DNA of 64,000 nucleotides from the IMG/VR virus record IMGVR_UViG_3300027621_000003, positions 62,001-126,000 of that record; one strand, written 5' to 3'. The position numbers were made by a program, and so were the translations under genes. This document shows positions 1 through 62,591 of this stretch, piece by piece. Positions within the stretch are counted from its first letter, which is position 1. Every line of letters begins with the position of its first letter. The notes below the pieces were generated by a model. That model saw only the letters and a list, made by a program, of their open reading frames with translations, ran no database searches and was not told the DNA's origin.

Positions 1-797
1 GGGTTTTTTATTTTTATTTGTGGGAGATTAATATTTGAGAAGTATTTTGACCAACCTTTATAATTCTCTAAATCATAAGGAGTTCCCCACTGTAACATGT
101 TTTCAATCTCAAATATACCAACTTTAAGACCATCATTAACTAACAGGTTATAAAGTAAACTTACATAATATTCACCATTTATATTAATGTCTAAATCAAT
201 AAGTTTTTGAGAATATTCTTTTAATAAATTACCCGATTTAAAATAATACGTACCATTTGATGCGTATTCATTCATTTTGTTGTCAGTAAAAGGTTCTTTT
301 TCTTTTATTTGAATAAGCTCCATATTACTTTCTTTACAGAAAGCATAATTGTCACTACCTAACATATGTGGGTGAAATCCTGTATAACAAGGAATTGCAC
401 CATCAAGATTTTTATCATTTACGTAATTAATAAAATTTTCAAAATCCCAATAAGTTCCATAATCACAATAACTCACAATTGTTTGTTTGTTATTATCAAT
501 AAAATCAAATATTTGATGAATTGCGTTTATTGGTCCCTTTGTGTTATTAGCAACTTCAAATATTCTACAATTTGGGGAAATATCATTAAGAACTTTCCTC
601 ATATTTGTTTGTTTTAAATGAATATCATTACAAATAAAAATAACATCCTTTACACCAGGAAATAAATCAACAACATGTTTTATTATAGGATAACCATCAA
701 CATCAATTAATGATTTGGTTTTTTCATATCCAGCGTCTATGAACCTTTTACCAATACCTGACATTGGTATAATTAATTGAATATTATTATCAATCAT
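1..797 (-). CDS. Sugar nucleotidyltransferase-like protein (NTP_transferase fold), runs off left edge
   Basis: Not in the ORF track. Manual translation from ATG at 797 gives MIDNNIQLIIPMSGIGKRFIDAGYEKTKSLIDVDG...SYCDY...NGEYYVS...WGTPYDL, with the IPMxGxGxRF..K signature; frame open to position 1. Confidence 0.8.
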   Translation of the reverse strand, partial: MIDNNIQLIIPMSGIGKRFIDAGYEKTKSLIDVDGYPIIKHVVDLFPGVKDVIFICNDIHLKQTNMRKVLNDISPNCRIFEVANNTKGPINAIHQIFDFIDNNKQTIVSYCDYGTYWDFENFINYVNDKNLDGAIPCYTGFHPHMLGSDNYAFCKESNMELIQIKEKEPFTDNKMNEYASNGTYYFKSGNLLKEYSQKLIDLDININGEYYVSLLYNLLVNDGLKVGIFEIENMLQWGTPYDLENYKGWSKYFSNINLPQIKIKN

Positions 798-798
798 A

Positions 799-1671
799 TT
801 AAAATGGCATATCAATGAATTTTTCGGGGTCATCAATGATTTTATTTATAATTAAATCATTCATATTGTAATTGGCTCCCTTAAAGTGGTTATAAAAACT
901 AATAATTTTATCTTTAGTTTCTTTATTGTTGAATATTTGGCTTGTGTCGTGTGAAAAATTATAAAATTTAAGATTATAACTATCATAAACACAATTTGAC
1001 TCAAGTATGTTAGTATCTGAATATTTGTTTGGTATTTGGGGAATATTTAATCTTTCTAAGATTTGATTAGTTATCCATATATTGAAATAAGGTGTTAAAT
1101 GATTTTGTGTGACAAATAATCTCTTATCTTTATAATGTTCTAATATAAAATCAGATACTTTTATATCACAAATTTCATCTTTCTCTTTCAATAATTCCAT
1201 ACAAACATTCATTCTTTCTTCAAAATAAAAATCAATTAAACCATTGTCATACAAATTTATAATTTCATCAATTTTACGTTTTTCTAAAATCAAAGACATT
1301 ATATTTTTCCATCCACAATTAATTAATGTTTGAAGTGTCCATCTTGGCGAAGCGTCTTCCCAATAAGTGGTATAAAATGATGAGTTGTATACATAGGGAA
1401 AACTAATTTTTACACAACTGTCTTTTAACATTGATTTTAAATTCTCTGTACCATAAACTCCGTGACTTTCTCCAAGTGGTTGGTATATAAAAACATCACA
1501 GTTTTTAAGTTCATCAACATCAATATTTACTAATTTTTTTGTTTGTTCTCTATCATGATTCACATAGGATATTAAATCATAATGTTTTTTGAATTCAGGT
1601 AAATTATTTAATAATTCATAAACATAAATAATGGCCTGACAATTGCCATATAGTATACATTTTTTTTTCAT
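799..1671 (-). CDS. WcbI-family polysaccharide biosynthesis putative acetyltransferase
   Basis: N-terminal YGNCQ motif, DVFIYQP, LFVTQNH; glycan-cluster context. Confidence 0.7.
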   Translation of the reverse strand: MKKKCILYGNCQAIIYVYELLNNLPEFKKHYDLISYVNHDREQTKKLVNIDVDELKNCDVFIYQPLGESHGVYGTENLKSMLKDSCVKISFPYVYNSSFYTTYWEDASPRWTLQTLINCGWKNIMSLILEKRKIDEIINLYDNGLIDFYFEERMNVCMELLKEKDEICDIKVSDFILEHYKDKRLFVTQNHLTPYFNIWITNQILERLNIPQIPNKYSDTNILESNCVYDSYNLKFYNFSHDTSQIFNNKETKDKIISFYNHFKGANYNMNDLIINKIIDDPEKFIDMPF

Positions 1672-2689: not shown

Positions 2690-3511
2690 TTATTTAAGTA
2701 TTTGCCAATTTTCGGGTATAGGATTTTCATAAATTGTGTAACCTTCTCTTTGGTTAGCATAATAATGAAAATACTTTGGGATTTGTTTTATTTTTTCGTT
2801 AGTTAAAGATAAAAAATAAATCAAAACTGAATAACTTGAATCAATAAAATGAATTTCTTTTGCGTTTTCTAAAATTTTAATTTGGTCAACCATAGTTTTT
2901 GAACCATCGTTTAATTGGTGGACATAAATGTCATTAGGTAATTTAGACTTATCAATATTTATCCCTCTTTGACTATCATCATGTAATACAATGTAATCTT
3001 TTTCAGGTAACAATTCATATTTTTTATTTTCACTATCGTCATCTCTGTAAACAGAAAATTCAGTTTCTCTAACTTTTAAATCAAGATTTTCAAACAAATA
3101 AAAAGAATGTGAAAAAGAAATGTTGTTATTTATATTTTTTCCTAAAAATGATTTCCATAACTCATAATCTTCTTTAAAACAACCAACTTTAATATTGTCA
3201 TAATCACTCCACTCTGAATAATCAACAAATTTGTGTGTATCATACTTTGTATCATATCTACAAGAATAATGGTCTGATTGCATACAAATCAAACAAGAAC
3301 TATTGTATATGTTTTGGTTAATTAATTTAGGTATAACACATTTTATATTTGGTTTGTGTTTATACATTTCTTCAATAACAATCCTTCTTGATTCGTCTAA
3401 TGCAAATATAATTAATTCATCGTACAAATTAGCATAGTAATTACATAATGAATTATTTGTAAATAAATCACCAAATCCTTGGTGATGCATTATTGTTGCT
3501 TTCTTATTCAT
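2690..3511 (-). CDS. Putative GT-B glycosyltransferase, paralog of 4593..5339
   Basis: HHQGFGD N-terminus, ILENAKEIHFIDSS, C-terminal NWQILK shared with paralog. Confidence 0.45.
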   Translation of the reverse strand: MNKKATIMHHQGFGDLFTNNSLCNYYANLYDELIIFALDESRRIVIEEMYKHKPNIKCVIPKLINQNIYNSSCLICMQSDHYSCRYDTKYDTHKFVDYSEWSDYDNIKVGCFKEDYELWKSFLGKNINNNISFSHSFYLFENLDLKVRETEFSVYRDDDSENKKYELLPEKDYIVLHDDSQRGINIDKSKLPNDIYVHQLNDGSKTMVDQIKILENAKEIHFIDSSYSVLIYFLSLTNEKIKQIPKYFHYYANQREGYTIYENPIPENWQILK

Positions 3512-4592: not shown

Positions 4593-5339
4593 TTAAATAA
4601 TTTGCCAATTTGTTAAAGTTTTTGGTTTAAGAAACATTTCTTTATAACCACGTAAACAATATGTTGATATTGTAATATGATTAAATAATTCATATTTACT
4701 ATCTACTTGATATAAAAACGCTCCCCATACAGAATCCAACACATGAATATCTTTTGCGTTTTGAAGTATTTTAATATAGTCAAAAAAAGTGTTTGTTGAC
4801 TTATTTAAATCAACTAATTTACTTGTAGGATGTTTATCTCTAATACTTGAAATAATACTATCATTTAATCCATGGTATAACACATAATCATTACCATGTT
4901 CCGCAACAAATTTTGAATATGTAGATTCTTCTAAGTTTAAATCTCTATCAAACTCAAACATTGACACTCTTTCAGAGTAATCAATCCCATATGATTTATA
5001 AAATTTCTCAACAAAAAAAAGATTATGGTCTCTATTACTAAATGCTCCTTGATAAGAATCATTTCTATAACCATCAAACATACCAAAAATTAATAATGAA
5101 TTATTGTGACGGTAGTCGTTTAAAAGAGATGATAAATTATTATCAATTTGAGATTTATCAACATAACATGCGGTCACATTTGGTAAAGATTTTAAGTAAA
5201 AATCAATTATCTCCTTAAAATCGTTTCTCATTAATAAATTAATTTTATTAAATTTCTTTGAAAGAATATTAACCAATGGGAGACAGTTAATTACATCTGT
5301 AAAACCTTGGTGAAATAAAATTGTTCCTGTATTATTCAT
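4593..5339 (-). CDS. Putative GT-B glycosyltransferase, paralog of 2690..3511
   Basis: FHQGFTD, ILQNAKDIHVLDSVW, NWQII. Confidence 0.45.
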   Translation of the reverse strand: MNNTGTILFHQGFTDVINCLPLVNILSKKFNKINLLMRNDFKEIIDFYLKSLPNVTACYVDKSQIDNNLSSLLNDYRHNNSLLIFGMFDGYRNDSYQGAFSNRDHNLFFVEKFYKSYGIDYSERVSMFEFDRDLNLEESTYSKFVAEHGNDYVLYHGLNDSIISSIRDKHPTSKLVDLNKSTNTFFDYIKILQNAKDIHVLDSVWGAFLYQVDSKYELFNHITISTYCLRGYKEMFLKPKTLTNWQII

Positions 5340-5340
5340 T

Positions 5341-5898
5341 TTATAAAAATTTTAACCAGCTAGTGTCATTATATGTTTTGTCGGGTTTACCAAAAGTTTC
5401 ATTAACCGCATTTACAACACCCATAAAACATGCTTCTAAATAATCGTGACCTGCAATAATACCGCCTTGTTTTATTTTGGGTAGCCACATATTAATATCT
5501 TCTTTACAAGAATTATACGAATGGTCACCATCAATATATACAAAATCTAATGAACCATCGGCAATTTCTTTAACAAATTCCTTAGAAGTTGTTTTATGTT
5601 TTTTAATAACACTAAAATTTTTTGTTCTAATATCAAAATTAGATTCAACAACGCTCATTGGGTATTTATCTGAGCAAGCATCACCTGGTGCGTATCCATT
5701 GGACCATGGGTCAATTGCATGTAACTCCTGTAGTCCATTTATATTATCCGCAAAAATGATTGTTGATTCACCTTGGTAGGAACCAACTTCAACCATGTTT
5801 GTAATTTTATTGTCTAAATCGTTTATTAAATCAATCAACCCTTGTTTGTAGGTTGAGTTTCTACATGTTGCTTCATGCAACTCAATTAATTCAGTCAT
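5341..5898 (-). CDS. Class I SAM-dependent methyltransferase (Methyltransf_24-like)
   Basis: VEVGSYQGES, AIDPW, DFVYIDGDHSY, GGIIAGHDY. Confidence 0.85.
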   Translation of the reverse strand: MTELIELHEATCRNSTYKQGLIDLINDLDNKITNMVEVGSYQGESTIIFADNINGLQELHAIDPWSNGYAPGDACSDKYPMSVVESNFDIRTKNFSVIKKHKTTSKEFVKEIADGSLDFVYIDGDHSYNSCKEDINMWLPKIKQGGIIAGHDYLEACFMGVVNAVNETFGKPDKTYNDTSWLKFL

Positions 5899-8004: not shown

Positions 8005-8478
8005 TTAAGTATAAATAGATTTAGATATGTTTATATAGTCAGTACAAATTGCGTATACATTTTTTGTTGTGGTAGATATAAGGTCAGTATCACTTAATAA
8101 CGGAATTATACATTTATCATTTAAGTTAAGTTCTAAATCATGAACCCAAATATGGTTAGTGCTTGTTAACACAAAATTATCTGATGTATGACAAAAAAAC
8201 ATGTATGGTGTTTCATAATTTTTCTGTAATTCACACAATCTTGATGCTGCATTTAAATTTTTACAATGAAACCATATTTTATGTTTTCTTTTTTCTATCC
8301 AAGTTTCCGATATTTCATAATCAGGAGTATCGTGACCTAAAAAAAACTTATTGTTTAAATAGTTAATATCCACCTCAACATCATAACCCGCAGAAATTGC
8401 GGTATCAATATATGATGGTGAATTTTCTCTACTTGGATTAGGGCCAATCATATTACCTCTATGTGAAATTAATTTCAT
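8005..8478 (-). CDS. Glycerophosphodiester phosphodiesterase-like (PLC-like) small protein
   Basis: ISHRGN, GYDVEVD, LGHD, WFHCKN, ICTDY. Confidence 0.65.
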   Translation of the reverse strand: MKLISHRGNMIGPNPSRENSPSYIDTAISAGYDVEVDINYLNNKFFLGHDTPDYEISETWIEKRKHKIWFHCKNLNAASRLCELQKNYETPYMFFCHTSDNFVLTSTNHIWVHDLELNLNDKCIIPLLSDTDLISTTTKNVYAICTDYINISKSIYT

Positions 8479-8783
8479 ATTTCTTCAATTCTAAGTGTTT
8501 TATCATCAATGAATAAATCGTAATAAGGTTTTGTAACATTTAATTCGTGGTGTTTAGCACCCCACTCATTAAGTTGTTTTTTTGTTAAATCATACCAATT
8601 TATTTGTGTACGACTACCACGAGCTGTCCAATATACAATTGTATTCCCATCATCATATAATCTATTAATTTTATCAATATTTTCTTTGATGGGTTTGGCG
8701 TTGTAGTAGTTTCTAGGTTCTGGTGTTTCACAGATTGTTTCATCTATATCAACATAAATGACTCTTGTTTTATTTATTTCCAT
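8475..8783 (-). CDS. Small HAD-superfamily phosphatase (capsule biosynthesis phosphatase-like)
   Basis: VDIDETIC, YWTARG, KPYYDLFIDDK. Confidence 0.75.
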   Translation of the reverse strand: MEINKTRVIYVDIDETICETPEPRNYYNAKPIKENIDKINRLYDDGNTIVYWTARGSRTQINWYDLTKKQLNEWGAKHHELNVTKPYYDLFIDDKTLRIEEI

Positions 8784-9444
8784 TTTGTTTAATAAGGTTT
8801 TGTCTATAAATTTCTTTTTTATCAGTAATTAGGTTATTAACTTCAGTTTCATTCAAAAAATGTGTCTTACCTAAAACGTGACTACCAATAAAAATTTCGG
8901 CAGATTTTTCACAAATATCTGTAGACATTATACATTCTTGAATTGTTTCTCCACAACAAATAATACCATGATTTTGTAGTAATATTAATTTAGGAAAATA
9001 TTTTTCTTCTTTAATAAAAAGATTAATACAATCTTTAATAACATTTGTTAATTCTTCACCAGGTTTAGCATATGGTACAAAACAAGATTTAGTACCATTA
9101 AAAATAACTTGGTCAGGAAATAATCTGTTTTGTGCAAATGTTTTACTTAACTCACTACATAAAATTTTTACAGTATTTGATGGGTGTGTGTGAGAAACAT
9201 AATTAATGTCATCAAAACTTAATAGGTAGGTGTGAAAACTTAATTCCATACTACCTCTTTTTTTAAAATTATTTAATTGATTACCTTTAAAATCAAAAAA
9301 GACTAAATCTTTTTTTGTGAGAGATTCTAATCTTGTCCCACTTGCTTTAATAATTAAGCCATTTTTATACTTAGAGGAAACATTTCCTTCAAAACCGACA
9401 CAATGTTTTGATACAGATTTAGATAGTTCTAATATTTTTTTCAT
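8770..9444 (-). CDS. Class II aldolase/adducin family protein
   Basis: EGNVS, IKASG, SMELSFH, HTHP, LQNHG metal-binding motifs. Confidence 0.85.
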   Translation of the reverse strand: MKKILELSKSVSKHCVGFEGNVSSKYKNGLIIKASGTRLESLTKKDLVFFDFKGNQLNNFKKRGSMELSFHTYLLSFDDINYVSHTHPSNTVKILCSELSKTFAQNRLFPDQVIFNGTKSCFVPYAKPGEELTNVIKDCINLFIKEEKYFPKLILLQNHGIICCGETIQECIMSTDICEKSAEIFIGSHVLGKTHFLNETEVNNLITDKKEIYRQNLIKQNGNK

Positions 9445-9458
9445 TATTATATCTTATT

Positions 9459-10907
9459 TTAACCATTATAGTTAAGATTCAATATAAAATATAATATATA
9501 GTCATAAAAAGTGTAATTCTTATTTATATCAAAAAAGATTAATCTTTTATAATTTAAGAATGTTACCTTGTTAAATCTATTTTCGTCTTGTAAATCAAAT
9601 TCAATTTTATTGTCGGATAATTTTTTTAATATATGTTTAATATTAAATGATTTGTCAATTAATAGTTCTAAACTTAATTTAGGATTAACGTTCAAATTTT
9701 GTAAGTCAATATCATCAATTGTGAAAAATTTTATTATAACATCGGCATTGTCTTTTTGGGGTAATATAAATTGTTCAAAATCAGATTCTCTATTTTTTAT
9801 ATTAGATAAAACTTGGTCAGGAGTATATCCTCTCTCTTTAACATCACGTGATATTTTCCACTTCTTTTTTAATAAATCATCAGTATCCATATAAATTTTT
9901 AAATCATAAAGATTGTTTTCAGATTGATTAAATAAACTATGAAGTCCACAGACAATTAAATTGTTTGATGGTGAAATTGGTTTTTTTTCTGTAAATTTTC
10001 CGGTTGAATGGTCATAATCAACTTGGTAAATTTCATTTCCAACTTTTAAATTGAAAATATCCTCACTCATTTTTGTAATATGATTTGCATTTGGATTTAA
10101 ATGAGTGTAAGTTTTCCAATTGTTATTTGTTCTTTCCCATTTGTGATATCTATCACATTCTAACAAAAAGGAATCCGTAAAAGAAATTTTTAATAAATTA
10201 CTTAATGTGGATTTTCCCGAACCAGAGTCACCACAAATGGCAAAAACATTACATTTTGATAAAATAAAACTATAATCTAAATCAAACAACGTATAGTTAA
10301 TTTTATTTGAATTCAAATATTCATAAAGTAATGTTTCAGGACAAGTACCGTATAAACTAATTAAATTCTGAATGTTGTTATAAATGTTAAAATAATTGTT
10401 CATTATTTTGGAACTTCCAAAAGCAAACGCATCACAAATGTAATTGTCCGTTGGGGTTTCTAACTTTAATTTGTCTATTTTACTATCTTCAGGAATAAAC
10501 AAAGAATCCTTTTCAAAATTAAAAAAATTGGTAGACTTAATTAATAAATCAGGTCTAAGTCGTATTACTAAATCATATTCTTTTCCCGACAAATCCTCAT
10601 TTATTTTTCTTATTTCATTTAACTTATAAAGTTTTGACCAATGATTTATTACATTGTTAATTTTTTTATTCTCATCGTAAAAGATATTATCTTCAACAAG
10701 GGTTGTAATAGGATTTAAAAGATTTTTGATATGATTTAAATCAGATTCACTAATTTGATTAAAATATTTATCCTCTAAATTTTCATTATTAGTTATGTGA
10801 AGATAAACATCAACGTTTACAAAGTTATTAATAATTTCTTCTTTAATAAAATTAATATTTTCTTGGTAATTTCTAAGATAACCTGAAATTAATAACGCAA
10901 CCTTCAT
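9459..10907 (-). CDS. Fusion: N-terminal glycan-locus domain (RxRPD) plus phosphoribulokinase/uridine-kinase-like domain
   Basis: N-terminal KVALLISGYLR..RLRPDL..DAFAFG; C-terminal GDSGSGKST, DRYH, LNPNAN, YDHSTG, GLH, RDVKERG, FILPQK..ADV as in PRK. Confidence 0.75.
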   Translation of the reverse strand: MKVALLISGYLRNYQENINFIKEEIINNFVNVDVYLHITNNENLEDKYFNQISESDLNHIKNLLNPITTLVEDNIFYDENKKINNVINHWSKLYKLNEIRKINEDLSGKEYDLVIRLRPDLLIKSTNFFNFEKDSLFIPEDSKIDKLKLETPTDNYICDAFAFGSSKIMNNYFNIYNNIQNLISLYGTCPETLLYEYLNSNKINYTLFDLDYSFILSKCNVFAICGDSGSGKSTLSNLLKISFTDSFLLECDRYHKWERTNNNWKTYTHLNPNANHITKMSEDIFNLKVGNEIYQVDYDHSTGKFTEKKPISPSNNLIVCGLHSLFNQSENNLYDLKIYMDTDDLLKKKWKISRDVKERGYTPDQVLSNIKNRESDFEQFILPQKDNADVIIKFFTIDDIDLQNLNVNPKLSLELLIDKSFNIKHILKKLSDNKIEFDLQDENRFNKVTFLNYKRLIFFDINKNYTFYDYILYFILNLNYNG

Positions 10908-10917
10908 CGTTTTACTA

Positions 10918-12135
10918 TTAAAAATTAGTTTTAAAACTATCTAAATTTATTTCCCATGGTGAATTTAATCCACCATCTAATTTAATACAATCTTTTGGAT
11001 TAACTTGTTTACTCAAATATTTGGTATCATTATTCCAAGCGGTTAACATAGTATCACTATATGAAATAGTTAGACAATCATTTTCCACTTGGGTTATCTC
11101 CCCGACAATATTATCAACCTTCACTCTCATGTATGTTTTAAACTCACCATTTTCTGTGTGTGATGTGTTATCAAATAAGTTTAAATTAACTTTATTTAAT
11201 GAATATAAAAAACGTTTATTTATATCTAAAAAAAATGGAGATATGATGGCTGTTAAATTACAACTTTTTTTGGAAAATAAAACATTACAAATACCACCAC
11301 CTATTGCACCAACAACTTCTTCAACATTGGCAAATAAAAGTATTTTTTCCGTAGTTGTCATGTTTTCTGTGAATACCTCTGTAAAACCATTTTCAATTAA
11401 AAAATTAACCAAAGAATCTTCGTTGACTAATTTACGTTTAGTTGTGTAGTTTGTACCTATATTACTAAAATCACCATGTAACCAACTTCTTCGTGAAATA
11501 TAAACTTTCTTAGGTAAATTTTCTTGATTAGTATCTTTACTCACTCTCTTAACAATTTTACGATATAAATCATAAATTTCATTTCTTGGGGGTAAATTAG
11601 AATCAAAATCGTGTGTATATGATGTTGATACTAAAATTGATGAGTACTCAGTATTTTCATCTATTATTTTAATATCATTATCTGTAATTCCCAGTATATC
11701 TAAAAACTCAGAAACAAATCTATAATGTTCTTTTTTATTGGGATTTGGATAATTCATTAATAGTTTTAAATTTGGTTTTGTTTTCTTCATTTCCATAAAA
11801 CTTATCAAATATGGTAATGTGTCATAAACAAAATGAAAATAATTATCGGTATTATAAATAAAGTAGAATAAACTTTCTGACTCAAAATTTTTAGTTGTTT
11901 TTTCCTCATCAAATTTAATATCTTTTGAAATTCCTTTCAAAGACATTGTGGTTTCTTGAATAGGATTAACTATTTGATTTGTTTCATTTGAAATAAAAAA
12001 AATGTTTGGATAAAATAAGGATTCTCCAGTTGGGATTACATTTTTTAATTCATAGACATTTATTTCTCGTTGATTTGAGTCAACAGGAAATAAATTAATT
12101 TTATCAATTATTTCTTTATACGATACAAGATTCAT
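10918..12135 (-). CDS. GT61 (DUF563) glycosyltransferase
   Basis: NYFHFVYDTLP, KVYISRR, RKLVNE, VVGAIGGGICNVLF. Confidence 0.75.
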   Translation of the reverse strand: MNLVSYKEIIDKINLFPVDSNQREINVYELKNVIPTGESLFYPNIFFISNETNQIVNPIQETTMSLKGISKDIKFDEEKTTKNFESESLFYFIYNTDNYFHFVYDTLPYLISFMEMKKTKPNLKLLMNYPNPNKKEHYRFVSEFLDILGITDNDIKIIDENTEYSSILVSTSYTHDFDSNLPPRNEIYDLYRKIVKRVSKDTNQENLPKKVYISRRSWLHGDFSNIGTNYTTKRKLVNEDSLVNFLIENGFTEVFTENMTTTEKILLFANVEEVVGAIGGGICNVLFSKKSCNLTAIISPFFLDINKRFLYSLNKVNLNLFDNTSHTENGEFKTYMRVKVDNIVGEITQVENDCLTISYSDTMLTAWNNDTKYLSKQVNPKDCIKLDGGLNSPWEINLDSFKTNF

Positions 12136-18026: not shown

Positions 18027-21000
18027 TTATAATCCATATTTTGATTTATCGGCGTTAAAGTTTTGTAATACTTGTGCTGAGGTAAGTGCTGCGTTGTATA
18101 AACGAGTTATACCAATTTTTCCATCAAACCATTGAGAAAACTCTCCACCATTGTAACTACCAATGTAAAGTGGGTTAGTTGAGTTTAATATACTTGCCAA
18201 ACTATGACCCACACTTCCTATACTTACACCATTTACAAATGTTTGAAGTGTATTGGCGGCAACATTGGTAAACACATAAACTATTTGGTACCATGTGTTA
18301 GTTGTTCCAGTGTAGAAGGTACTATCAACAAATAATGATGAACCAGTACCACTACCTGAACCTAATTGAGCATAATATGTGGTGTTAGTTGTTCTAATAC
18401 TATAACTTACATCTTGGGATAGACCTCCATTATCAAACTTTCCAAGAACAACATCGTTACCTAACACTGCTTGATTAACCCATACTTCCATAGTCCAGTT
18501 CCCACTTCCTGGTTCTAATAAGGGATTATCCGCAACACTAACTTGAGATGAGGCTCCATTATATGTGAAGTATGGTGATGTATATGTGATATTGGACATT
18601 GAACCATTTAATTCATTTCCTGATAAATCATTAATTGTTGTACCAGTACCAGGGTAACTTGATAAATTACTTGGGTCATAATATAAAACAAGATTAGCGG
18701 TTACTGGAACCTCAGGTGTTGAGGTTGGTGTTGGTGTTGGTGTTGGTGTTGTTGTATTAGTTGGTGTAACTGTTACTGTTGGTGTTTGTGTTATTGTAGG
18801 AGTAGGCGTTTCAGTATTTGTTGGTGTTTGTGTTATTGTTGGTGTTTGTGTTATTGTAGGTGTGGGTGTTTCAGTATTTGTAAGTGTTGGAGTTACAGTC
18901 TGAGTCGGAGTTGGTGTCTGAGTCGGAGTTTCTGTATTTGTAAGTGTTGGAGTTATAGTATTAGTTGGAGTATTAGTTGGAGTTTCTGTAGGTGTTGGCG
19001 TATTAGTAGGAGTTTCAGTATTAGTCGGTGTAGATGTTGGTGTATTAGTAGGTGTTTCAGTGTTAGTAGGTGTTTGTGTTGGCGTATTAGTAGGAGTTTC
19101 AGTATTAGTCGGTGTATTAGTTGGTGTAACACTTGTTGTTGGTGTAACTGTCGGCGTAATAGTTGGAGTTGGAGTTGCCGATGGACACATACCTAAATCA
19201 ACAATAACCAAAGAATTAACACCACCAGTTCTTACAATACTATTTTTGGTTGCACATAAATAAACATCAGGATTTGGTGGTAAAATGTTTCCAACAATTA
19301 AAGTACCATAACAATCCGTATAAGAATAAATAACGTTTCCTCTATCAGATTCATTTATTAATTGATAATATTCACATCCTGTATATCCTGGTGTTGATGT
19401 AACACTTGGTGTTGGTGTTTTAGTTGATGTAACACTTGGTGTTGGTGTTTTAGTTTGTGTATTAGTTGGTGTTGGTGTTTTAGTTTGTGTGTTAGTTTGT
19501 GTGTTAGTAGGCGTTGTCGTAGGTGTTTTAGTGTTAGTAGGCGTTGTCGTAGGTGTTTTAGTATTAGTTGGTGTACGTGTTAAATTTATAGTGTTGGTCG
19601 GTGTCTGAGTAGATGTTACCGTTGGTGTTACCGTTGGTGTTAATGTCTGAGTAGATGTTACCGTTGGTGTTAATGTTTGTGTTGCAGTTGCGGTTGGAGT
19701 TAATCCAGTTGTTGCGGTTGGTGTAACCGTTTTTGTTGGTGTTAGAGTTAAAGTTGGTGTTACTGTAGGAGTTTCAGTGTTTGTTGGTGTTACTGATGAC
19801 GTAGGTGTGTTTGTGGGTGTATGTGTAGGTGTTATTGTAGGTGTAGGTGTAGGGAAATCACAATTTAAACAATATGGATTTAAAAAATTATAAATTGGTC
19901 TTAAAATTCTGGCGTTGTGTTGAATTTCAGGAACCGATAATGGTTTTGCATACATATTAAATTTGGATATTGCACCATCAAAAGTACCGGCAAAATTTTG
20001 TTCTATTAATATATTGGTTGTAAGGCCACTTAATGTTGTTCCACTCAAAATATTTGGTGGGAACAATTCAGGGTCTTGTGTGTAGTAATTAATGTCGTTT
20101 GTTGGTACCGCGCTAAAAATTAAATTTTCATGTAATCCTTGTGTTCCACCACCCCAAGAAATATTAAATGGTACTCCAACTTGATTTTCTTTGTGTCCAA
20201 ATAAACCACGAGGTATGATTTCTTCAACATCTTCAAATACATAAAATATTATACCATTAATGTAAATTTTCATTCTACCTCTACGGTATATTTTTTCTAA
20301 AATCCAAAGATTGTTTAACTCAACAAGTTCTTCTATTGTTGGAATTAATTCATAATGTGTTATTGGTGGTGATATTAATGAAACTGAATTATTTACGGTA
20401 CTGGCAGTATATGGGAAGATAGTGATTGTCCCAAGACCACCACGATAAAACAAATCGCACGTATCTAACCATGTATATCGTTCAAAGACTACATCCACTA
20501 AAACCCAATGTTCTTGTTCGTCATATGTTGTTCCACTACAATTATCATAAATTCCTCTATTGGTACAATAGTTATTTATTGAATAACCAGTTACTGAACC
20601 AGGACCTAAAGTTTCACAAGAACCTGTGTAAATACAATCACCTGTTATGGTTAAAGTTCTTATACAAATTTTTGGATTGTGTGGGTCACCACTAAATTTG
20701 ATTGCAATTGCATTAGACATTGAATCATATTCAGGATTATGTTCAGGAATTGGAACTGGTGGTTCGGGACAACAACAAAGGTCTACTTGAGTATGTGAAT
20801 CTGTAGTTCCTGTTGGTGGATATACTAATATACAATTAGAATCATTATATTGCAAATAACCCGGCTTGGTTATTATTGAAAATTTAATGGTTCCCAATCC
20901 AACTCGTTTTGTTGTTACAAATTTAAAATCTCCGGTTGATGCTGTGTATCCAACAACAGTTCCCTCAAGATATTGAGCGTCGTCATGATAAATTAATGCC

Positions 21001-21971
21001 GTATCACCCGAAACCCATAATAAATTTGGAGAAACAGTTAATGTTCTACCTGTTGTTGTTAAATCAAAAATTGTTGTTGATGAAGTTGTATATCCCGAAT
21101 ATAAATCAACACAAAAACAACTTGTTAATCCAGTCAACGGTGTTGTAATTCTGTAATAAGATGGGTCACCTGAATTTGTTCCGGCTGCGTGGTGCCAATA
21201 CTTATTTTCGGCTCTTGTACCCATGTAAAAGAATATACCAGCATTATTTGGGTAATATTCATTTAATGTGGTTTGTCCTGAACTTGGAGAATAGACATTT
21301 GATAATCTTGGCTTTAAAGTCATCTCTACCGTCCATCCTTTTGGATATCTTTCAGGTAAAATTTTATAATCGTATCCGAACAATTCATAAAATCCTTGAT
21401 AAAAACCACCATATAATTCTTGGTAATTTCCAATAGTTTGTGCACTATATGACACAACATTATAAATCGTTCCTGCGGTTACACCCGAAAATCTTGTGTT
21501 TGGAGTCCAAGTATAACCAGTAACTTGATGTAATTTTAATCTTCTATCAAATTTATACCTATCAAATTTTTCATTAGCAGGTAGTAAGCCATTAGTATAA
21601 GTTATTGATTGACCTGTCATTCCGGTTACCAATCCGTTGTCAGTTCCTGTTAATCCAATATCACAAATTGTTTTTGAAGAATAACAATCAATTAGAACAT
21701 CATTTGGGTTGTAGTAGTTTTCAGAAATTAAAATGTTATCAAAGTCATAATTTCCATATGTTAATGAAAAATTTTGATTACTTCCTGTAAAATTAATATC
21801 AAACTTAACTGGTAACACGTCACCATTATATGCGCCAATAATATATGGTGAAAAAATAACTTCTTCGTTATAATCTCGTTCATCTGATGCTAAAGAAAGG
21901 TCTGTAACCTCCAAAAATGGTGATAAATACCATTTTTTATAGACATATTGGTTAATGTTCTGATAAGCCAT
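18027..21971 (-). CDS. Large virion-type protein with two Thr/Pro mucin-like tracts and a C-terminal LamG/ConA domain
   Basis: 1314 aa; (TPT)n tracts separated by a small Cys-containing domain; C-terminal LVLYYD..SYPGTG..DLSGN..WYQIV..IGS..FDGKIG..LYNAAL..QNFNA LamG signature. Confidence 0.8.
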   Translation of the reverse strand: MAYQNINQYVYKKWYLSPFLEVTDLSLASDERDYNEEVIFSPYIIGAYNGDVLPVKFDINFTGSNQNFSLTYGNYDFDNILISENYYNPNDVLIDCYSSKTICDIGLTGTDNGLVTGMTGQSITYTNGLLPANEKFDRYKFDRRLKLHQVTGYTWTPNTRFSGVTAGTIYNVVSYSAQTIGNYQELYGGFYQGFYELFGYDYKILPERYPKGWTVEMTLKPRLSNVYSPSSGQTTLNEYYPNNAGIFFYMGTRAENKYWHHAAGTNSGDPSYYRITTPLTGLTSCFCVDLYSGYTTSSTTIFDLTTTGRTLTVSPNLLWVSGDTALIYHDDAQYLEGTVVGYTASTGDFKFVTTKRVGLGTIKFSIITKPGYLQYNDSNCILVYPPTGTTDSHTQVDLCCCPEPPVPIPEHNPEYDSMSNAIAIKFSGDPHNPKICIRTLTITGDCIYTGSCETLGPGSVTGYSINNYCTNRGIYDNCSGTTYDEQEHWVLVDVVFERYTWLDTCDLFYRGGLGTITIFPYTASTVNNSVSLISPPITHYELIPTIEELVELNNLWILEKIYRRGRMKIYINGIIFYVFEDVEEIIPRGLFGHKENQVGVPFNISWGGGTQGLHENLIFSAVPTNDINYYTQDPELFPPNILSGTTLSGLTTNILIEQNFAGTFDGAISKFNMYAKPLSVPEIQHNARILRPIYNFLNPYCLNCDFPTPTPTITPTHTPTNTPTSSVTPTNTETPTVTPTLTLTPTKTVTPTATTGLTPTATATQTLTPTVTSTQTLTPTVTPTVTSTQTPTNTINLTRTPTNTKTPTTTPTNTKTPTTTPTNTQTNTQTKTPTPTNTQTKTPTPSVTSTKTPTPSVTSTPGYTGCEYYQLINESDRGNVIYSYTDCYGTLIVGNILPPNPDVYLCATKNSIVRTGGVNSLVIVDLGMCPSATPTPTITPTVTPTTSVTPTNTPTNTETPTNTPTQTPTNTETPTNTPTSTPTNTETPTNTPTPTETPTNTPTNTITPTLTNTETPTQTPTPTQTVTPTLTNTETPTPTITQTPTITQTPTNTETPTPTITQTPTVTVTPTNTTTPTPTPTPTSTPEVPVTANLVLYYDPSNLSSYPGTGTTINDLSGNELNGSMSNITYTSPYFTYNGASSQVSVADNPLLEPGSGNWTMEVWVNQAVLGNDVVLGKFDNGGLSQDVSYSIRTTNTTYYAQLGSGSGTGSSLFVDSTFYTGTTNTWYQIVYVFTNVAANTLQTFVNGVSIGSVGHSLASILNSTNPLYIGSYNGGEFSQWFDGKIGITRLYNAALTSAQVLQNFNADKSKYGL
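18715..19180 (-). repeat. Thr/Pro low-complexity coding repeat 2 (TNTETPT-type units)
   Basis: Degenerate GGTGTT/GGAGTT tandem units on the + strand; boundaries approximate. Confidence 0.9.
19390..19855 (-). repeat. Thr/Pro low-complexity coding repeat 1
   Basis: Degenerate tandem units encoding TPTxT; boundaries approximate. Confidence 0.9.
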
Positions 21972-59667: not shown

Positions 59668-61662
59668 ATGATTGAATCAATGGATAACACAGAAGGTAAA
59701 TCAACACCTAAAAAGAAATCAGGAGGAACTCCTGTATTGGACAATTTCAGTAAGGACTTAATTAAAATGGCTCAAGAGGGTAAATTGGACCCTGTAATTG
59801 GTCGTGAGATGGAAATTAACCGAATTGCTCAAATCCTTTCCCGTAGAAAGAAAAATAACCCAATTATCATTGGAGAACCTGGTTGTGGTAAAACCGCAAT
59901 TGTTGAAGGTTTGGCAATGAAAATCTTTAACGGGGATTGTCCTCGTAACTTGCGTGATAAACGTATTGTATTATTGGATTTAACATCCATCGTTGCCGGT
60001 ACAAAGTATCGTGGTCAATTTGAAGAACGTATGAAAGTTATTATTGAAGAACTTTCAGAAAATCCTGACATTGTAATTTTCATTGATGAAATTCATACAA
60101 TTGTTGGAGCTGGTAATTCTTCAGGTTCAATGGACGCATCCAACATCTTTAAACCAGCTCTTGCTCGTGGTGAAATCCAATGTATCGGAGCTACCACTTT
60201 GGATGAGTATCGTACCAATTTTGAAAAAGACGGAGCCCTTGAGCGTCGTTTCCAAAAAGTTGTTGTTGACTCTCCAAATAAAGCTGAGACTTTAACAATT
60301 ATTACAAATGTTAAAGACAAGTATGAAGACTACCATAAGGTTAGTTATTCTGATGAAGTCTTGGAAATGTGTGTGAACTTGGCTGACCGTTACATTACTG
60401 ACCGTGAGTTCCCTGACAAAGCATTTGACATTATGGATGAAGTTGGTGCCCGTTCTCAAGTAGATACCAAAATCCCTGAAGCATTGGAGATTCTAAAACA
60501 AAAAGCGGCAGAACTTAAACAACAAAAACTTGATGTTGTTAAAAGACAAGACTTTGAACACGCTGCTGAACTACGTGATAAAGAAAAGAAACTTCTTGAG
60601 CGTTTAGAACTTGAAAAAGCAAAGTTTGAAAAGGAACAATCTGAAAATCGTAGACCGATTGACCCTGAGTTGGTATTGAATGTAGTTTCTTCAATGACAA
60701 AGATTCCAGTCAACAAATTAAATGTTGATGATAAAATGGCTTTGATTGGAATGGAAAAAACATTGATTTCTGAAGTTGTAGGTCAGGATGATGCAGTGTC
60801 AAAGATTTCAAAATCCATCCGTAGAAACCGTCTTGGTATTAAAGACCCAAACAAACCAATTGGTTCATTTATATTCTTGGGTTCAACAGGTGTGGGTAAA
60901 ACTCACTTGGCAAAACAATTGGCAAAACAAATCTTTGGTAGTTCAGATGCTCTTATCCGTGTGGACATGAGTGAGTACCAAGAGAAACATACCATTTCTC
61001 GTTTGATTGGTTCCCCTCCAGGTTATGTGGGTTATGAAGAAGGTGGACAATTAACCGAACAGGTTAAGAACAAACCTTATTCTGTAATCTTGTTTGATGA
61101 GGTAGAAAAGGCAAACAAAGAAATCTTCCATACACTTCTTCAGATGTTGGACGAAGGATACCTTACAGATTCTTTGGGTAGAAAGATTAACTTCAAAAAC
61201 TGTTTAATTATTATGACATCAAACATTGGAGTTAAGAAACTTCAAGACTTTGGAACAGGTATCGGTTTTTCAAGTAACGCTTATTCTAATGAAGAACAGA
61301 AGAAAGAAATCTTGAAAAAAGAAATGAAGAATTTTTTCTCTCCTGAGTTCTTGAACCGTATTGATGATGTGATTGTATTTAATTCTTTGAATGAAGAATC
61401 TATCAAAAAGATTGTTGACATTGAATTGAAGAAATTAATGGGTCGTTTATCAGAATTGAAACTTGTTTTCAAATATGATGATAAATTGGTTTCACACATC
61501 GCCAAAATTGGTTATGATGAAGTGTATGGTGCTCGTCCAATTAAAAGAGCAATTCAGGACCAAATTGAAGATTTGATATCTGAAGAAGTCCTAAACGGAA
61601 ATGTGGTTGAGGGTAAACAATATTCCCTATCGGTAAAATCTGAGAAAGTAATCATCAAATAA
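59668..61662 (+). CDS. clpC: ClpC-like AAA+ unfoldase lacking the N-terminal Clp_N domain
   Basis: [24 protein letters not shown]-type middle domain [30 protein letters not shown] ClpP-docking loop, GARP. Confidence 0.88.
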
Positions 61663-61763: not shown

Positions 61764-62591
61764 TTAAATATACCACTGAGATTTTGCGTATTCTTTATCG
61801 TACTGATACTCATGTTTCTCATACCCAAGTTTATCAATCATTGCATATGCGGTCTTGATTGAATTATCCAAATCATCAATTACAACATACTCACTTGGTC
61901 TGTGGTAGTTGTAATATCCACAAGAAATGTTGATACAAGAGAAATCAAACTTCATCTTCAACTGTGAAACATCGGTGTATGGGTGAACCATATACTCACG
62001 TTTTGGCATGTATTCATCCAATACCTTATCAACAATGGTAAAGAATTCACTGTCACGGTTGAATAGACGTACACCAGAACAAACTTCAGTAACCATGTAG
62101 TTCAACGGTGCGTCCAACTGAATTGCGTAAGCCACATCAACAAAGAAGTTTGGGTCGGCTTTACGAGAACCCCAACATCCTGTTTCTTCACTAACAAAGA
62201 ACGCCGCCTTTACGTGTGGTAAATCCAATAAAGCTGACATTGCTCCAAACACACCACATTTGTCATCACCACCAATACCGGTTTCTTTACCTTCAGGGGT
62301 GTAACCCTTAAGACATACTTTAAGGTTTCCTTCGTAATCAGGTAGAGTTTCTGTGTGAACAACAATCTCGTTCATTCCGTGAACAGTATCGGTATGACCA
62401 ACCATACATGGATAAAGTTTTCCTTCAAAACCTTCACTTGTTTTGGTTGCGTAAATGTTCATCATTTCATCTACCACGTAAGGAATGTTATTTTCCTTAA
62501 GCCAGTTGGAAATGAATTCCACCATATATTCTTCATGGTACGTAGCGGTTGGAACGCTAAGGACTCTTTCTAATAAATCTAATCTGTTCAT
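61764..62591 (-). CDS. M20/M28-clan zinc peptidase-like protein (likely start MNRLDL at 62591)
   Basis: GHTDTVH, GGDDKCG, SEETG, QLD, YNYH metal ligands. Confidence 0.8.
   Translation of the reverse strand: MNRLDLLERVLSVPTATYHEEYMVEFISNWLKENNIPYVVDEMMNIYATKTSEGFEGKLYPCMVGHTDTVHGMNEIVVHTETLPDYEGNLKVCLKGYTPEGKETGIGGDDKCGVFGAMSALLDLPHVKAAFFVSEETGCWGSRKADPNFFVDVAYAIQLDAPLNYMVTEVCSGVRLFNRDSEFFTIVDKVLDEYMPKREYMVHPYTDVSQLKMKFDFSCINISCGYYNYHRPSEYVVIDDLDNSIKTAYAMIDKLGYEKHEYQYDKEYAKSQWYI

Follow-up and report, generated by a model that had tools for sequence, protein, structure and literature searches.

A conserved cassette of T4-like phages in which a phosphoribulokinase-type kinase accompanies predicted sugar-activating and glycan-transfer enzymes

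A large uncultured T4-like phage carries a widely conserved gene cassette in which a Calvin-cycle-type phosphoribulokinase (PRK), fused to a domain with a predicted glycosyltransferase-like (GT-A) fold, sits with a class II aldolase-like enzyme, a tiny phosphatase, a tiny phosphodiesterase, a double nucleotidyltransferase and a GT61-like glycosyltransferase. The cassette probably builds and attaches an unusual pentulose-derived sugar unit by an undescribed route, although its chemistry beyond the family level is inferred. The window analysed here is a stretch of 64,000 nucleotides from IMG/VR record IMGVR_UViG_3300027621_000003 (positions 62,001 to 126,000). The four central genes are real ORFs, all on the minus strand, at 8005-8478, 8475-8783, 8770-9444 and 9459-10907, with 4-nt and 14-nt overlaps between neighbours. 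The four-gene block reported in an earlier sequence-only reading is therefore confirmed, with the corrections given below.

The gene at 9459-10907 encodes a 482-aa fusion protein. Its residues 221-482 (nt 9459-10247) form a PRK-type P-loop kinase, in which Pfam PRK (PF00485) matches residues 221-397 (2.5e-34; 119 bits versus a cut-off of 22) and the P-loop GDSGSGKS at 226-233 is invariant. To distinguish PRK from uridine kinase, a distinction that the sequence-only reading had named as decisive, we compared subfamily scores. The kinase scores 188.5 bits against the plant/cyanobacterial PRK model of NCBIfam (PRK07429), whereas it scores only 72 and 84 bits against the uridine kinase models TIGR00235 and NF004018, whose cut-offs are 220 and 180. 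Similarly, PDB entries of PRK match at 103-116 bits and those of UCK at 33-38 bits (UCK2, 38). However, the PRK score is below the curated full-length cut-off (NF005655, 236 bits), only profile positions 10-220 of 326 are matched, and the C-terminal third of PRK is lacking. No phylogeny against PRK classes and Udk was built. In the Chlamydomonas enzyme, D57 and H105 form the catalytic dyad, and R64, Y103, R159, D160 and R164 serve ribulose-5-phosphate (Ru5P) binding (PMC9978339; bioRxiv 10.1101/422709). These residues map to D252, H300, R259, Y298, R354, D355 and R359, respectively, all of which are invariant in 27 family members; ATP-dependent conversion of Ru5P to ribulose-1,5-bisphosphate (RuBP) was not assayed. 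Compared with plant/cyanobacterial-type PRKs, such as Synechococcus PRK (6HZK/6KEV) and Chlamydomonas PRK (6H7G), the kinase aligns over about 175-200 residues at 114-116 bits and retains the P-loop, the Asp/His dyad, the Ru5P-phosphate ligands (Arg64, Tyr103) and the Arg159-Asp160-Arg164 loop, but it has no C-terminal dimerisation/CP12-regulation region, is fused to the N-terminal domain, and is encoded by a phage inside a glycan cluster. The loci examined show no RuBisCO.

Residues 1-215 of the fusion (nt 10263-10907) form the N-terminal domain, which the sequence-only reading had recognised by an RxRPD motif. The domain is real: G9, R12, Y111, R118 and D120 are invariant, and the sequence is DUF7796-like. 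Its structural model (pLDDT 92) adopts a GT-A Rossmann-like fold and matches BoGT6a, a GT6 enzyme, at a Foldseek E-value of 4e-8 and a VIA Z-score of 12.8 with 185 residues aligned. The GT-A fold is, however, shared with nucleotidyltransferases, and IspD scores nearly as well (Z 11.1), so that the domain might not be a glycosyltransferase. Sequence evidence does not decide between the two, since only R118-P119-D120 sits at the place expected for a DxD (or NxN) donor/metal motif, and there is no Pfam glycosyltransferase hit but only DUF7796 in relatives.

The gene at 8770-9444 encodes a 224-aa Zn enzyme of the class II aldolase/epimerase family (FucA/AraD/MtnB superfamily; PF00596, 8.8e-24, 84.8 bits versus a cut-off of 22.2). 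The phosphate-site residues G20-N21-x-S23 and S35-G36 and the Zn/base residues E67, H85, H87 and H159 are invariant in 24 family members, including long and fused forms. FucA is the best PDB match, although FucA Tyr113 is not conserved in the pairwise alignment. The protein does not belong to any known subfamily (FucA, AraD, MtnB, RhaD, ribulose-1-phosphate (Ru1P) aldolase): the best NCBIfam hit, L-Ru5P 4-epimerase, reaches 57.8 bits versus a cut-off of 251, and all others are lower, with every hit far below its cut-off. It cannot be assigned to the aldolase, epimerase or dehydratase type. We also considered whether the C-terminal extension of the long aldolase forms is a fused glycerophosphodiester phosphodiesterase (GDPD), but rejected this idea because the extension ends in the same E-x-Y-R motif as the short form and has no HRG/ExD motifs.

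The gene at 8475-8783 encodes a 102-aa capless (C0) HAD phosphatase of the BcbF/EcbF "capsule biosynthesis phosphatase" type. The hit to TIGR01689 is weak (1e-7; 31.9 bits versus a cut-off of 162), but the protein matches PDB 9iqw, a "capsule biosynthesis protein", at 2.8e-13, and HAD motifs I-IV (D12-x-D14-x-T16, T53, K85 and D94) are invariant in 21 sequences. Its mean column identity (72%) is the highest among the four alignments made of cassette proteins (fusion, its N-domain, GDPD and HAD). The gene at 8005-8478 encodes a 157-aa protein for which Pfam and NCBIfam gave no family; no Pfam hit was found even at an E-value of 10, including the GDPD model PF03009, and a profile search of the PDB gave only E 0.47 to 1zcc. 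It is nonetheless GDPD-like: H6-R7-G8, E18-N19, E35-x-D37 and H49-D50, a complete catalytic set, are invariant in 25 homologues, and its model (pLDDT 94) matches 22 GDPD/PLD structures at Z-scores of 8.8-11.4 over about 150 of 157 residues, after which the scores drop to 7.6. The protein is thus a minimal form of the predicted TIM barrel, which in full-size GDPDs has about 230-250 aa. A complex of the always-adjacent small HAD and mini-GDPD was not modelled, and we make no claim of binding. One alignment row (L037) was left out of structure prediction. In the divergent loci, a 200-aa GDPD-like gene replaces the 157-aa one.

Two further core members were missed or incompletely described in the sequence-only reading. 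The adjacent gene at 10918-12135 (minus strand) encodes a 405-aa GT61-like glycosyltransferase (PF04577, 4.3e-15; 56.6 bits versus a cut-off of 27), for which a sequence search of the PDB returned nothing. The nucleotidyltransferase, placed at 1..797 in that reading, is an ORF at 3-836 on the minus strand (feature 1..836) that runs off the window and represents the N-terminal 278 residues of the protein. In the full record (G000, locus L057, 2801-4423), it is a 540-aa tandem nucleotidyltransferase (NT1::NT2), with NTP_transferase/NTP_transf_3 hits in both halves. Both halves keep GxGxRF and WGTPxD; G27-x-G29-x-R31 with W250-G-T-P253-x-D255, and G290-x-G292-x-R294 with W516-G-T-P519-x-D521, are at least 93% conserved in 31 sequences, and both sites look active.

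To examine whether these genes co-occur elsewhere, the other point on which the sequence-only reading had staked its proposal, we collected 40 other distinct viral loci and recorded the genes within 10 kb of the PRK gene. A GDPD-like gene was found in 39 loci, a tandem nucleotidyltransferase in 39, a GT61-like transferase in 36, the GT-A domain in 35 (in the same frame as PRK in 33), the aldolase-like gene in 35, and the small HAD in 22, being absent from 18. This co-occurrence is far beyond chance. In addition, members are sometimes fused to each other, as PRK::aldolase in loci L050 and L051 and as HAD_2::aldolase in loci L001, L023, L024 and L031. More than 1,200 protein clusters (at 90% identity) match the fusion, and all of the 120 best listed are full length. 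In contrast, only one close hit was found in a pattern scan of one genome for each of 185,579 GTDB species, and isolate phages (INPHARED) gave no full-length relative but only weak Udk-like hits. Full-text literature searches found no description of the cassette, of DUF7796, or of PDB 9IQW or 9QKN.

The surrounding glycan cluster belongs to a T4-like phage and not to a bacterium. The same contig carries the Gp23 capsid, gp20 portal, terminase and DNA polymerase, with such genes on both sides of the block, and the capsid is closest to those of Microcystis and Flavobacterium myophages. The 22-gene cluster contains no transmembrane protein, flippase or polymerase, and all its proteins are predicted to be soluble. 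A giant-virus origin, suggested by GVMAG contig names and eukaryote-like GT families, was rejected for the records that were searched: two near-complete contigs of 318 kb and 385 kb that carry the cassette have Gp23 and no NCLDV capsid, although the NCLDV model gave no hit in any control genome either, and three other large contigs were not searched. Habitat and expression were not examined.

What the analysis itself establishes is the composition of the cassette, its tight co-inheritance with occasional fusions, the intactness of all the catalytic motifs and the predicted solubility of the cluster proteins; the reaction scheme that follows is our inference, to which we give a probability of about 0.5. 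In this view, the block is the enzymatic core of a cassette of T4-like aquatic phages that makes a pentulose-derived glycan unit and attaches it. The PRK domain would phosphorylate C1 of Ru5P, or of a very close omega-phospho-2-ketose, to give a 1,5-bisphosphate. The HAD phosphatase and the FucA-like enzyme would then process it, on the model of the proven archaeal pair of RuBP 5-phosphatase and Ru1P aldolase, with a net effect of moving the phosphate from C5 to C1 and probably epimerising the ketopentose-1-phosphate, or otherwise rebuilding it by aldol chemistry. The tandem nucleotidyltransferase would couple the sugar phosphate to an NMP, and the GDPD-like enzyme would act on the resulting phosphodiester or diphosphate linkage, either transferring, cyclising or trimming it. 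Finally, the GT-A domain and the GT61-like enzyme would place the unit on a glycan, most likely assembled in the cytoplasm on a soluble target such as a virion fibre or capsid protein, or on a host envelope precursor. No enzyme activity, substrate or product is known for any member, nor is the acceptor glycan. Moreover, a ketose 1-phosphate is not an anomeric phosphate, so an NDP-1-ketopentose is not an ordinary glycosyl donor, and the roles of the GDPD-like enzyme and of the second nucleotidyltransferase domain are therefore guesses.

The sequence-only reading had proposed a kinase, epimerase/aldolase, phosphatase and nucleotidyltransferase route to an activated pentulose/ketose (or polyol-phosphate) donor, with the fused domain possibly the transferase. 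This interpretation is partly supported. The PRK-type assignment, the predicted GT-A fold of the fused domain, the grouping of the genes with the GDPD-like gene into one conserved functional unit and the non-Calvin use of PRK are upheld, and neither of its two refuting conditions, a plain uridine kinase and a lack of co-occurrence, holds. The bacterial capsule setting is not supported, and the product and the order of steps are still inference.

Several individual steps have precedents. [quoted passage not shown] However, the haloarchaeal bisphosphate comes from ribose-1,5-bisphosphate isomerase rather than a PRK, that pathway is catabolic and not tied to nucleotidyltransferases and glycosyltransferases, and the sequences are not orthologous (46 bits versus a cut-off of 300). 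Activation of a non-anomeric ketose phosphate by an NTP_transferase-family enzyme for a glycan decoration occurs in the route from CDP-6-D-fructose to CDP-glucitol/mannitol (PMC10918830). CDP-xylulose is likewise converted to CDP-arabinitol in S. pneumoniae 17F. These routes use one nucleotidyltransferase plus an SDR reductase and have no kinase, aldolase-like, HAD or GDPD partner. In PRPP-dependent ribofuranosylation (Hib Bcs3 CriT/CrpP, PMC10299916; C. jejuni Cj1432, PMC13276843), a bisphosphorylated pentose is used, a phosphorylated residue is transferred, and a dedicated HAD enzyme removes the leftover phosphate, but the donor, which is made by PRPP synthetase and not by a PRK, and the transferase fold differ, and CrpP has a cap domain. 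The small HAD of the BcbF/EcbF type (TIGR01689; PDB 9IQW, 1XPJ) is the same minimal capless enzyme, and in two bacterial loci (L071 and L072) it sits between a GT61-like gene and an NT1-like gene. In this analogue (GT61-like, small HAD, NT, NT::APH-kinase), an APH-family kinase fused to a nucleotidyltransferase fills the slot of PRK, the GDPD-like and aldolase-like genes are lacking, and the function is also unknown. Glycosyltransferase-rich "host recognition clusters", large variable islands of glycan genes next to tail-fibre genes, have been described in pelagimyophages and cyanomyophages (PMC7029224), but that work does not mention a PRK, aldolase, GDPD or tandem-nucleotidyltransferase cassette.

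Among the alternatives, the least unlikely is that the GT-A domain adds a sugar to the growing glycan and the fused kinase phosphorylates that residue in place, so that no free bisphosphate is made and the nucleotidyltransferase, GDPD-like enzyme and HAD build and edit a phosphodiester-linked (teichoic-acid-like or phosphoglycan) decoration. The presence of both domains on one polypeptide in 33 of 40 loci fits this idea; capless C0 HADs usually act on large substrates, and the closest solved relative of the small HAD is a capsule biosynthesis protein; GDPD enzymes, moreover, cut phosphodiesters such as teichoic acid, and phage K gp155 is among the fold hits. On the other hand, all residues that bind the small substrate Ru5P in PRK are invariant, and the kinase also occurs free or fused to the aldolase-like enzyme instead of the GT-A domain (loci L045-L053), which fits a soluble metabolite better. 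We regard as more doubtful a catabolic module in which PRK, HAD and aldolase redirect host pentose phosphates during infection (Ru5P to RuBP to Ru1P to DHAP plus glycolaldehyde) and the neighbouring glycan genes are unrelated. The same three chemistries make up the proven haloarchaeal pathway, and Ru1P aldolase is among the NCBIfam hits (5e-12), but this hit is the one far below its cut-off mentioned above, no glycolaldehyde reductase was seen, the kinase is physically fused to a GT-A-fold domain, NT::NT, GDPD-like and GT61-like genes accompany it in 36-39 of 40 loci, and the cassette always lies among glycosyltransferases and methyltransferases.

Two other possibilities are very unlikely. An ordinary uridine/cytidine kinase that boosts UTP/CTP supply for nucleotide-sugar synthesis is suggested by the IMG annotation of the homologues as "uridine kinase" and by PF00485, which covers both enzymes, but it is contradicted by the subfamily scores and active-site residues described above. 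Mis-assembled or recently captured bacterial capsule DNA is suggested by one homologous locus in a MAG titled "uncultured proteobacterium" and by the partial bacterial analogue, but the phage genes on the same contig, the Gp23-encoding 318-kb and 385-kb contigs and the scarcity of bacterial relatives argue against it, and the GC content (25-29%) matches the rest of the left arm of the window. A speculative extension of the main reading, which is improbable but not excluded, is that RuBP or an epimer is the entry to a previously unknown way of donating 2-ketopentofuranose residues: after nucleotidylation of the 1-phosphate, the minimal GDPD would use the neighbouring anomeric C2 hydroxyl to expel NMP and form a strained 1,2-cyclic phosphate, the GT-A or GT61 enzyme would open that ring onto the acceptor, and the capless HAD would remove the phosphate left on the glycan. 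How ketoses such as xylulose, fructose or sorbose are activated for polysaccharide synthesis is an open question, which this scheme would answer while giving RuBP a second biological role.

PRK is regarded as one of the two signature enzymes of the Calvin cycle, whereas here a PRK with an intact Ru5P site is encoded by phages and locked into a cassette with nucleotide-activation and glycan-transfer genes. If the main inference holds, a pentulose bisphosphate is a precursor of a glycan building block, which would be a new nucleotide-sugar or phosphosugar pathway; abundant uncultured T4-like phages invest in an elaborate cytoplasmic glycosylation system built from unusually small enzymes; and the "uridine kinase" annotation of these proteins in public metagenome data is wrong.

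The cassette also has a recurrent accessory neighbour, a 248-aa protein of unknown family at 4593-5339 (minus strand) with an N-terminal HQGFxD motif, whose function was not tested. Its tblastn hits occur in 21 loci, often directly upstream of the kinase or downstream of GT61, and it has a paralogue at 2690-3511 with which it shares 25% identity (E 1e-12).

The four consecutive genes described in the sequence-only reading are present: window positions 8005-10907 hold four minus-strand ORFs, at 8005-8478, 8475-8783, 8770-9444 and 9459-10907, and neighbours overlap by 4 and 14 nt, as in a translationally coupled operon. These ORFs sit in a run of 22 same-strand genes (3-21971, minus strand) with 25-29% G+C. 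The window is not bacterial; it carries a T4-type major capsid protein (Gp23, 4.6e-73), a gp20 portal and a large terminase, and the parent record is a 117.6-kb IMG/VR viral contig with a family-B DNA polymerase just beyond the window start. The capsid is most like those of Microcystis and Flavobacterium myophages and of uncultured huge phages, at about 40-44% identity.

The largest of the four ORFs (9459-10907, 482 aa) encodes the kinase fusion, of which residues 221-397 match Pfam PRK (2.5e-34). In the NCBIfam comparison, the plant/cyanobacterial PRK subfamily scores 188.5 bits, uridine kinase 84 and 72 bits, and proteobacterial PRK 43 bits; among solved structures, PRKs score 82-116 bits, against 33-38 for uridine-cytidine kinases. 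The literature names Asp57/His105 as the catalytic dyad of Chlamydomonas PRK (PMC9978339), and Arg64, Tyr103, Arg159, Asp160 and Arg164 as the Ru5P ligands (bioRxiv 10.1101/422709). In the HMMER alignment these residues fall on D252, H300, R259, Y298, R354, D355 and R359, and every one of them is invariant in an alignment of 27 family members that are only 52-78% identical. However, the protein lacks the C-terminal third of PRK and misses the curated cut-off (236 bits). We conclude that it is a PRK-type kinase with an Ru5P-like site, although RuBP formation was not assayed here and no PRK/Udk tree was built. It is not a plain uridine kinase, an identity that had been specified in advance as one that would count against the sequence-only reading. 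The best solved relative of the kinase domain is 9QKN, which was deposited as 'uridine kinase' alongside the 'cyanobacteria-specific phosphoribulokinase' entries 9QKO/9QKP; no paper was found for these entries, which may be a PRK-like branch relevant to the origin of the phage enzyme.

The fused N-domain (residues 1-215) has no Pfam hit itself, but its relatives hit DUF7796, and G9, R12, Y111, R118 and D120 are invariant even at 23-28% identity. An AlphaFold model of this domain (pLDDT 92) is a GT-A fold. The structure predictions in this work rest on 25-29 sequences, with one alignment row left out. The best matches of the model are GT6 enzymes, with BoGT6a at Foldseek E 4e-8 and VIA Z 12.8 over 185 residues, but other GT-A families follow closely, and nucleotidyltransferases of the same fold score only slightly lower (IspD Z 11.1). 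There is no DxD motif; instead, R118-P-D120 sits where it would be. A glycosyltransferase is therefore the likeliest reading of this domain, but it is not proven.

The ORF at 8770-9444 encodes a class II aldolase-family protein (8.8e-24), in which the FucA-type phosphate loops and the Glu/His3 zinc site are invariant across short, long and fused forms. It reaches no subfamily cut-off, scoring 58 bits against the epimerase model, 53 against FucA, 46 against Ru1P aldolase and 45 against MtnB. The ORF at 8475-8783 encodes a 102-aa capless HAD with all four motifs, which has the highest mean column identity (72%) of the four cassette proteins that we aligned; its nearest relatives are the BcbF/EcbF 'capsule biosynthesis phosphatase' family and PDB 9IQW. 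The product of 8005-8478 has no Pfam hit but carries invariant HRG, EN, ExD and HD motifs, and its model (pLDDT 94) matches 22 GDPD/PLD structures at Z 8.8-11.4 over about 150 of its 157 residues, before a drop to Z 7.6. It is a pared-down GDPD barrel with a complete active site. Complex formation between these proteins was not modelled, and sequencing runs were not examined. The four-gene block is part of a larger conserved cassette.

The fusion has more than 1,225 relatives among 90%-identity clusters, and the best 120 are all 439-491 aa and at least 51% identical. A pattern scan of one genome for each of 185,579 prokaryotic species found one locus and IMG/VR gave 54, whereas GenBank phages gave none. 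To examine co-occurrence, the absence of which elsewhere had likewise been specified in advance as evidence against the sequence-only reading, we built HMMs from the family members and searched all open frames of 40 distinct loci with usable flanks. Within 10 kb of the PRK gene, we found a GDPD-like gene in 39 loci, a tandem nucleotidyltransferase (NT::NT) in 39, a GT61-like gene in 36, the GT-A domain in 35 (in the same frame as PRK in 33), the aldolase-like gene in 35 and the small HAD in 22. The usual order is GT61, fusion, aldolase, HAD, GDPD and NT::NT. In this phage the order is kept, but about 7 kb of further glycan genes separate the GDPD gene from the nucleotidyltransferase. The ORF at 3-836 is only the first half of that enzyme, which has 540 aa and in which both halves keep the GxGxRF and WGTPxD signatures.

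Gene fusions also tie the enzymes together. Among the cassette loci, PRK::aldolase occurs in L050 and L051, and HAD_2::aldolase in L001, L023, L024 and L031, while the PRK domain also occurs alone in L045-L053. A divergent subgroup replaces the 157-aa GDPD with a 200-aa protein carrying the same motifs. Many relatives (L006:11486-12211 and 11 other loci) carry a TylF/Methyltransf_24 O-methyltransferase between the kinase and the aldolase-like gene, where this window has none, although it has a Methyltransf_24 gene elsewhere in the cluster (5341-5898); the sugar unit may be O-methylated. In addition, two paralogous minus-strand proteins of the window (4593-5339 and 2690-3511; 25% identity) start with an HQGFxD motif and have no family hit, and their homologues are frequent neighbours of the cassette in other phages, often directly next to the kinase or GT61 gene. 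Two near-complete contigs with the cassette (318 kb and 385 kb) encode Gp23 and no detectable NCLDV capsid, so the carriers are T4-like phages, some of them jumbo. In a further carrier, a 540-kb viral contig, a 637-aa phage protein (L034:5579-7492, minus strand) that combines an NTP-transferase, a HAD domain and an EcKL/APH-like kinase lies a few kb from the PRK cassette, and thus is a second, differently built kinase/phosphatase/NT unit in the same phage.

A bacterial analogue was also found. Of 401 sampled genomes of the phylum of the single GTDB hit, 12 have the small HAD. In two of them (loci L071:8790-13311 and L072:7692-12342, in bacterial genomes G053 and G161), the small BcbF-type HAD (126 aa) lies between a GT61-like gene (595-630 aa) and an NT1-like nucleotidyltransferase gene (244-245 aa; E 1e-25 to 1e-26 against the phage NT profile), followed by an NT::APH-family kinase fusion (537 aa). 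This four-gene set, the function of which is unknown, has no GDPD-like or aldolase-like gene. The combination of kinase, HAD, nucleotidyltransferases and GT61 therefore recurs with a different kinase, which argues that the kinase feeds the nucleotidyltransferase rather than being a housekeeping enzyme. In about ten sampled bacterial genomes the same small HAD module is fused to a larger protein; in the two that we scanned, the partner is the C-terminus of an SDR epimerase/dehydratase (L073:10096-11595) or the N-terminus of a class IV aminotransferase (L074:9828-11255). This suggests that the module serves as a general add-on in sugar-modifying pathways.

The analysis itself establishes the families, the intact active sites, the co-inheritance and the fusions, together with the predicted solubility of the 22 cluster proteins (no 19-residue window above KD 1.6, apart from one borderline window in GT61) and the absence of any recognised flippase, polymerase or initiating transferase among them (no Wzx, Wzy, ABC exporter or initiating phosphoglycosyltransferase). 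The route itself is our inference. In this view, PRK would add a 1-phosphate to Ru5P or a close analogue, and the HAD and the FucA-like enzyme would handle the bisphosphate as the haloarchaeal RuBP 5-phosphatase and Ru1P aldolase do (PMC9700705), which would shift the phosphate to C1 and epimerise or rebuild the ketopentose. The tandem NT would then activate it, with a precedent in CDP-6-fructose (PMC10918830), the GDPD-like enzyme would work on the resulting phosphodiester, and the GT-A and GT61 enzymes would attach the unit. Alternatively, the HAD may clean up a phosphate left on the glycan, as CrpP does after PRPP-dependent ribosylation (PMC10299916). No activity data exist, and we give this general reading a probability of about 0.5, while any particular order of steps deserves much less. 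The interpretation offered in the sequence-only reading, a kinase, epimerase/aldolase, phosphatase and nucleotidyltransferase route to an unusual activated sugar donor, is thus supported in part.

The acceptor has not been identified. The cluster is rich in GT families known mostly from eukaryotes (PF11397 GlcNAc-T, GT10, GT11, GT25, Fringe/GT31 and GT61), which, together with the predicted solubility of its products and the lack of recognised export genes, points to cytoplasmic glycosylation of a soluble acceptor. The PF11397 GlcNAc transferase family glycosylates proteins in the cytoplasm, so virion-protein glycosylation is plausible. Directly upstream, the cluster abuts a 1314-aa lectin-domain protein (18027-21971, minus strand) with a C-terminal ConA-like/Laminin_G_3 domain (1.6e-18), which is a candidate fibre or decoration protein and a possible glycosylation target.

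Among the alternatives, phosphorylation at the level of the glycan by the fusion is possible but unlikely, and a purely catabolic pentose-bisphosphate shunt is more doubtful still. That the kinase is a uridine kinase, or that the block is captured host DNA, we regard as very improbable.

Each protein belongs to a known superfamily, and glycan islands in aquatic T4-like phages are known (PMC7029224). However, that paper does not mention this cassette, and full-text searches of the literature found no other description of it. What is new, in our assessment, is a viral nucleotide-sugar and glycosylation module with an unprecedented enzyme set, including a non-Calvin PRK.

Two further genes were observed outside the cassette. 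Just beyond the window start in the parent record, a 557-aa protein with an HtrL/YibB domain and a weak TET-associated glycosyltransferase (TAGT) hit (L057:4416-6089, plus strand) lies between the tandem NT and the DNA polymerase, and could relate to DNA or LPS modification. At 59668-61662 (plus strand), the window encodes a ClpB/Hsp104-like double AAA+ chaperone (AAA_2 1.5e-66, ClpB D2-small 5.8e-24), which is not a familiar gene of T4-like phages.
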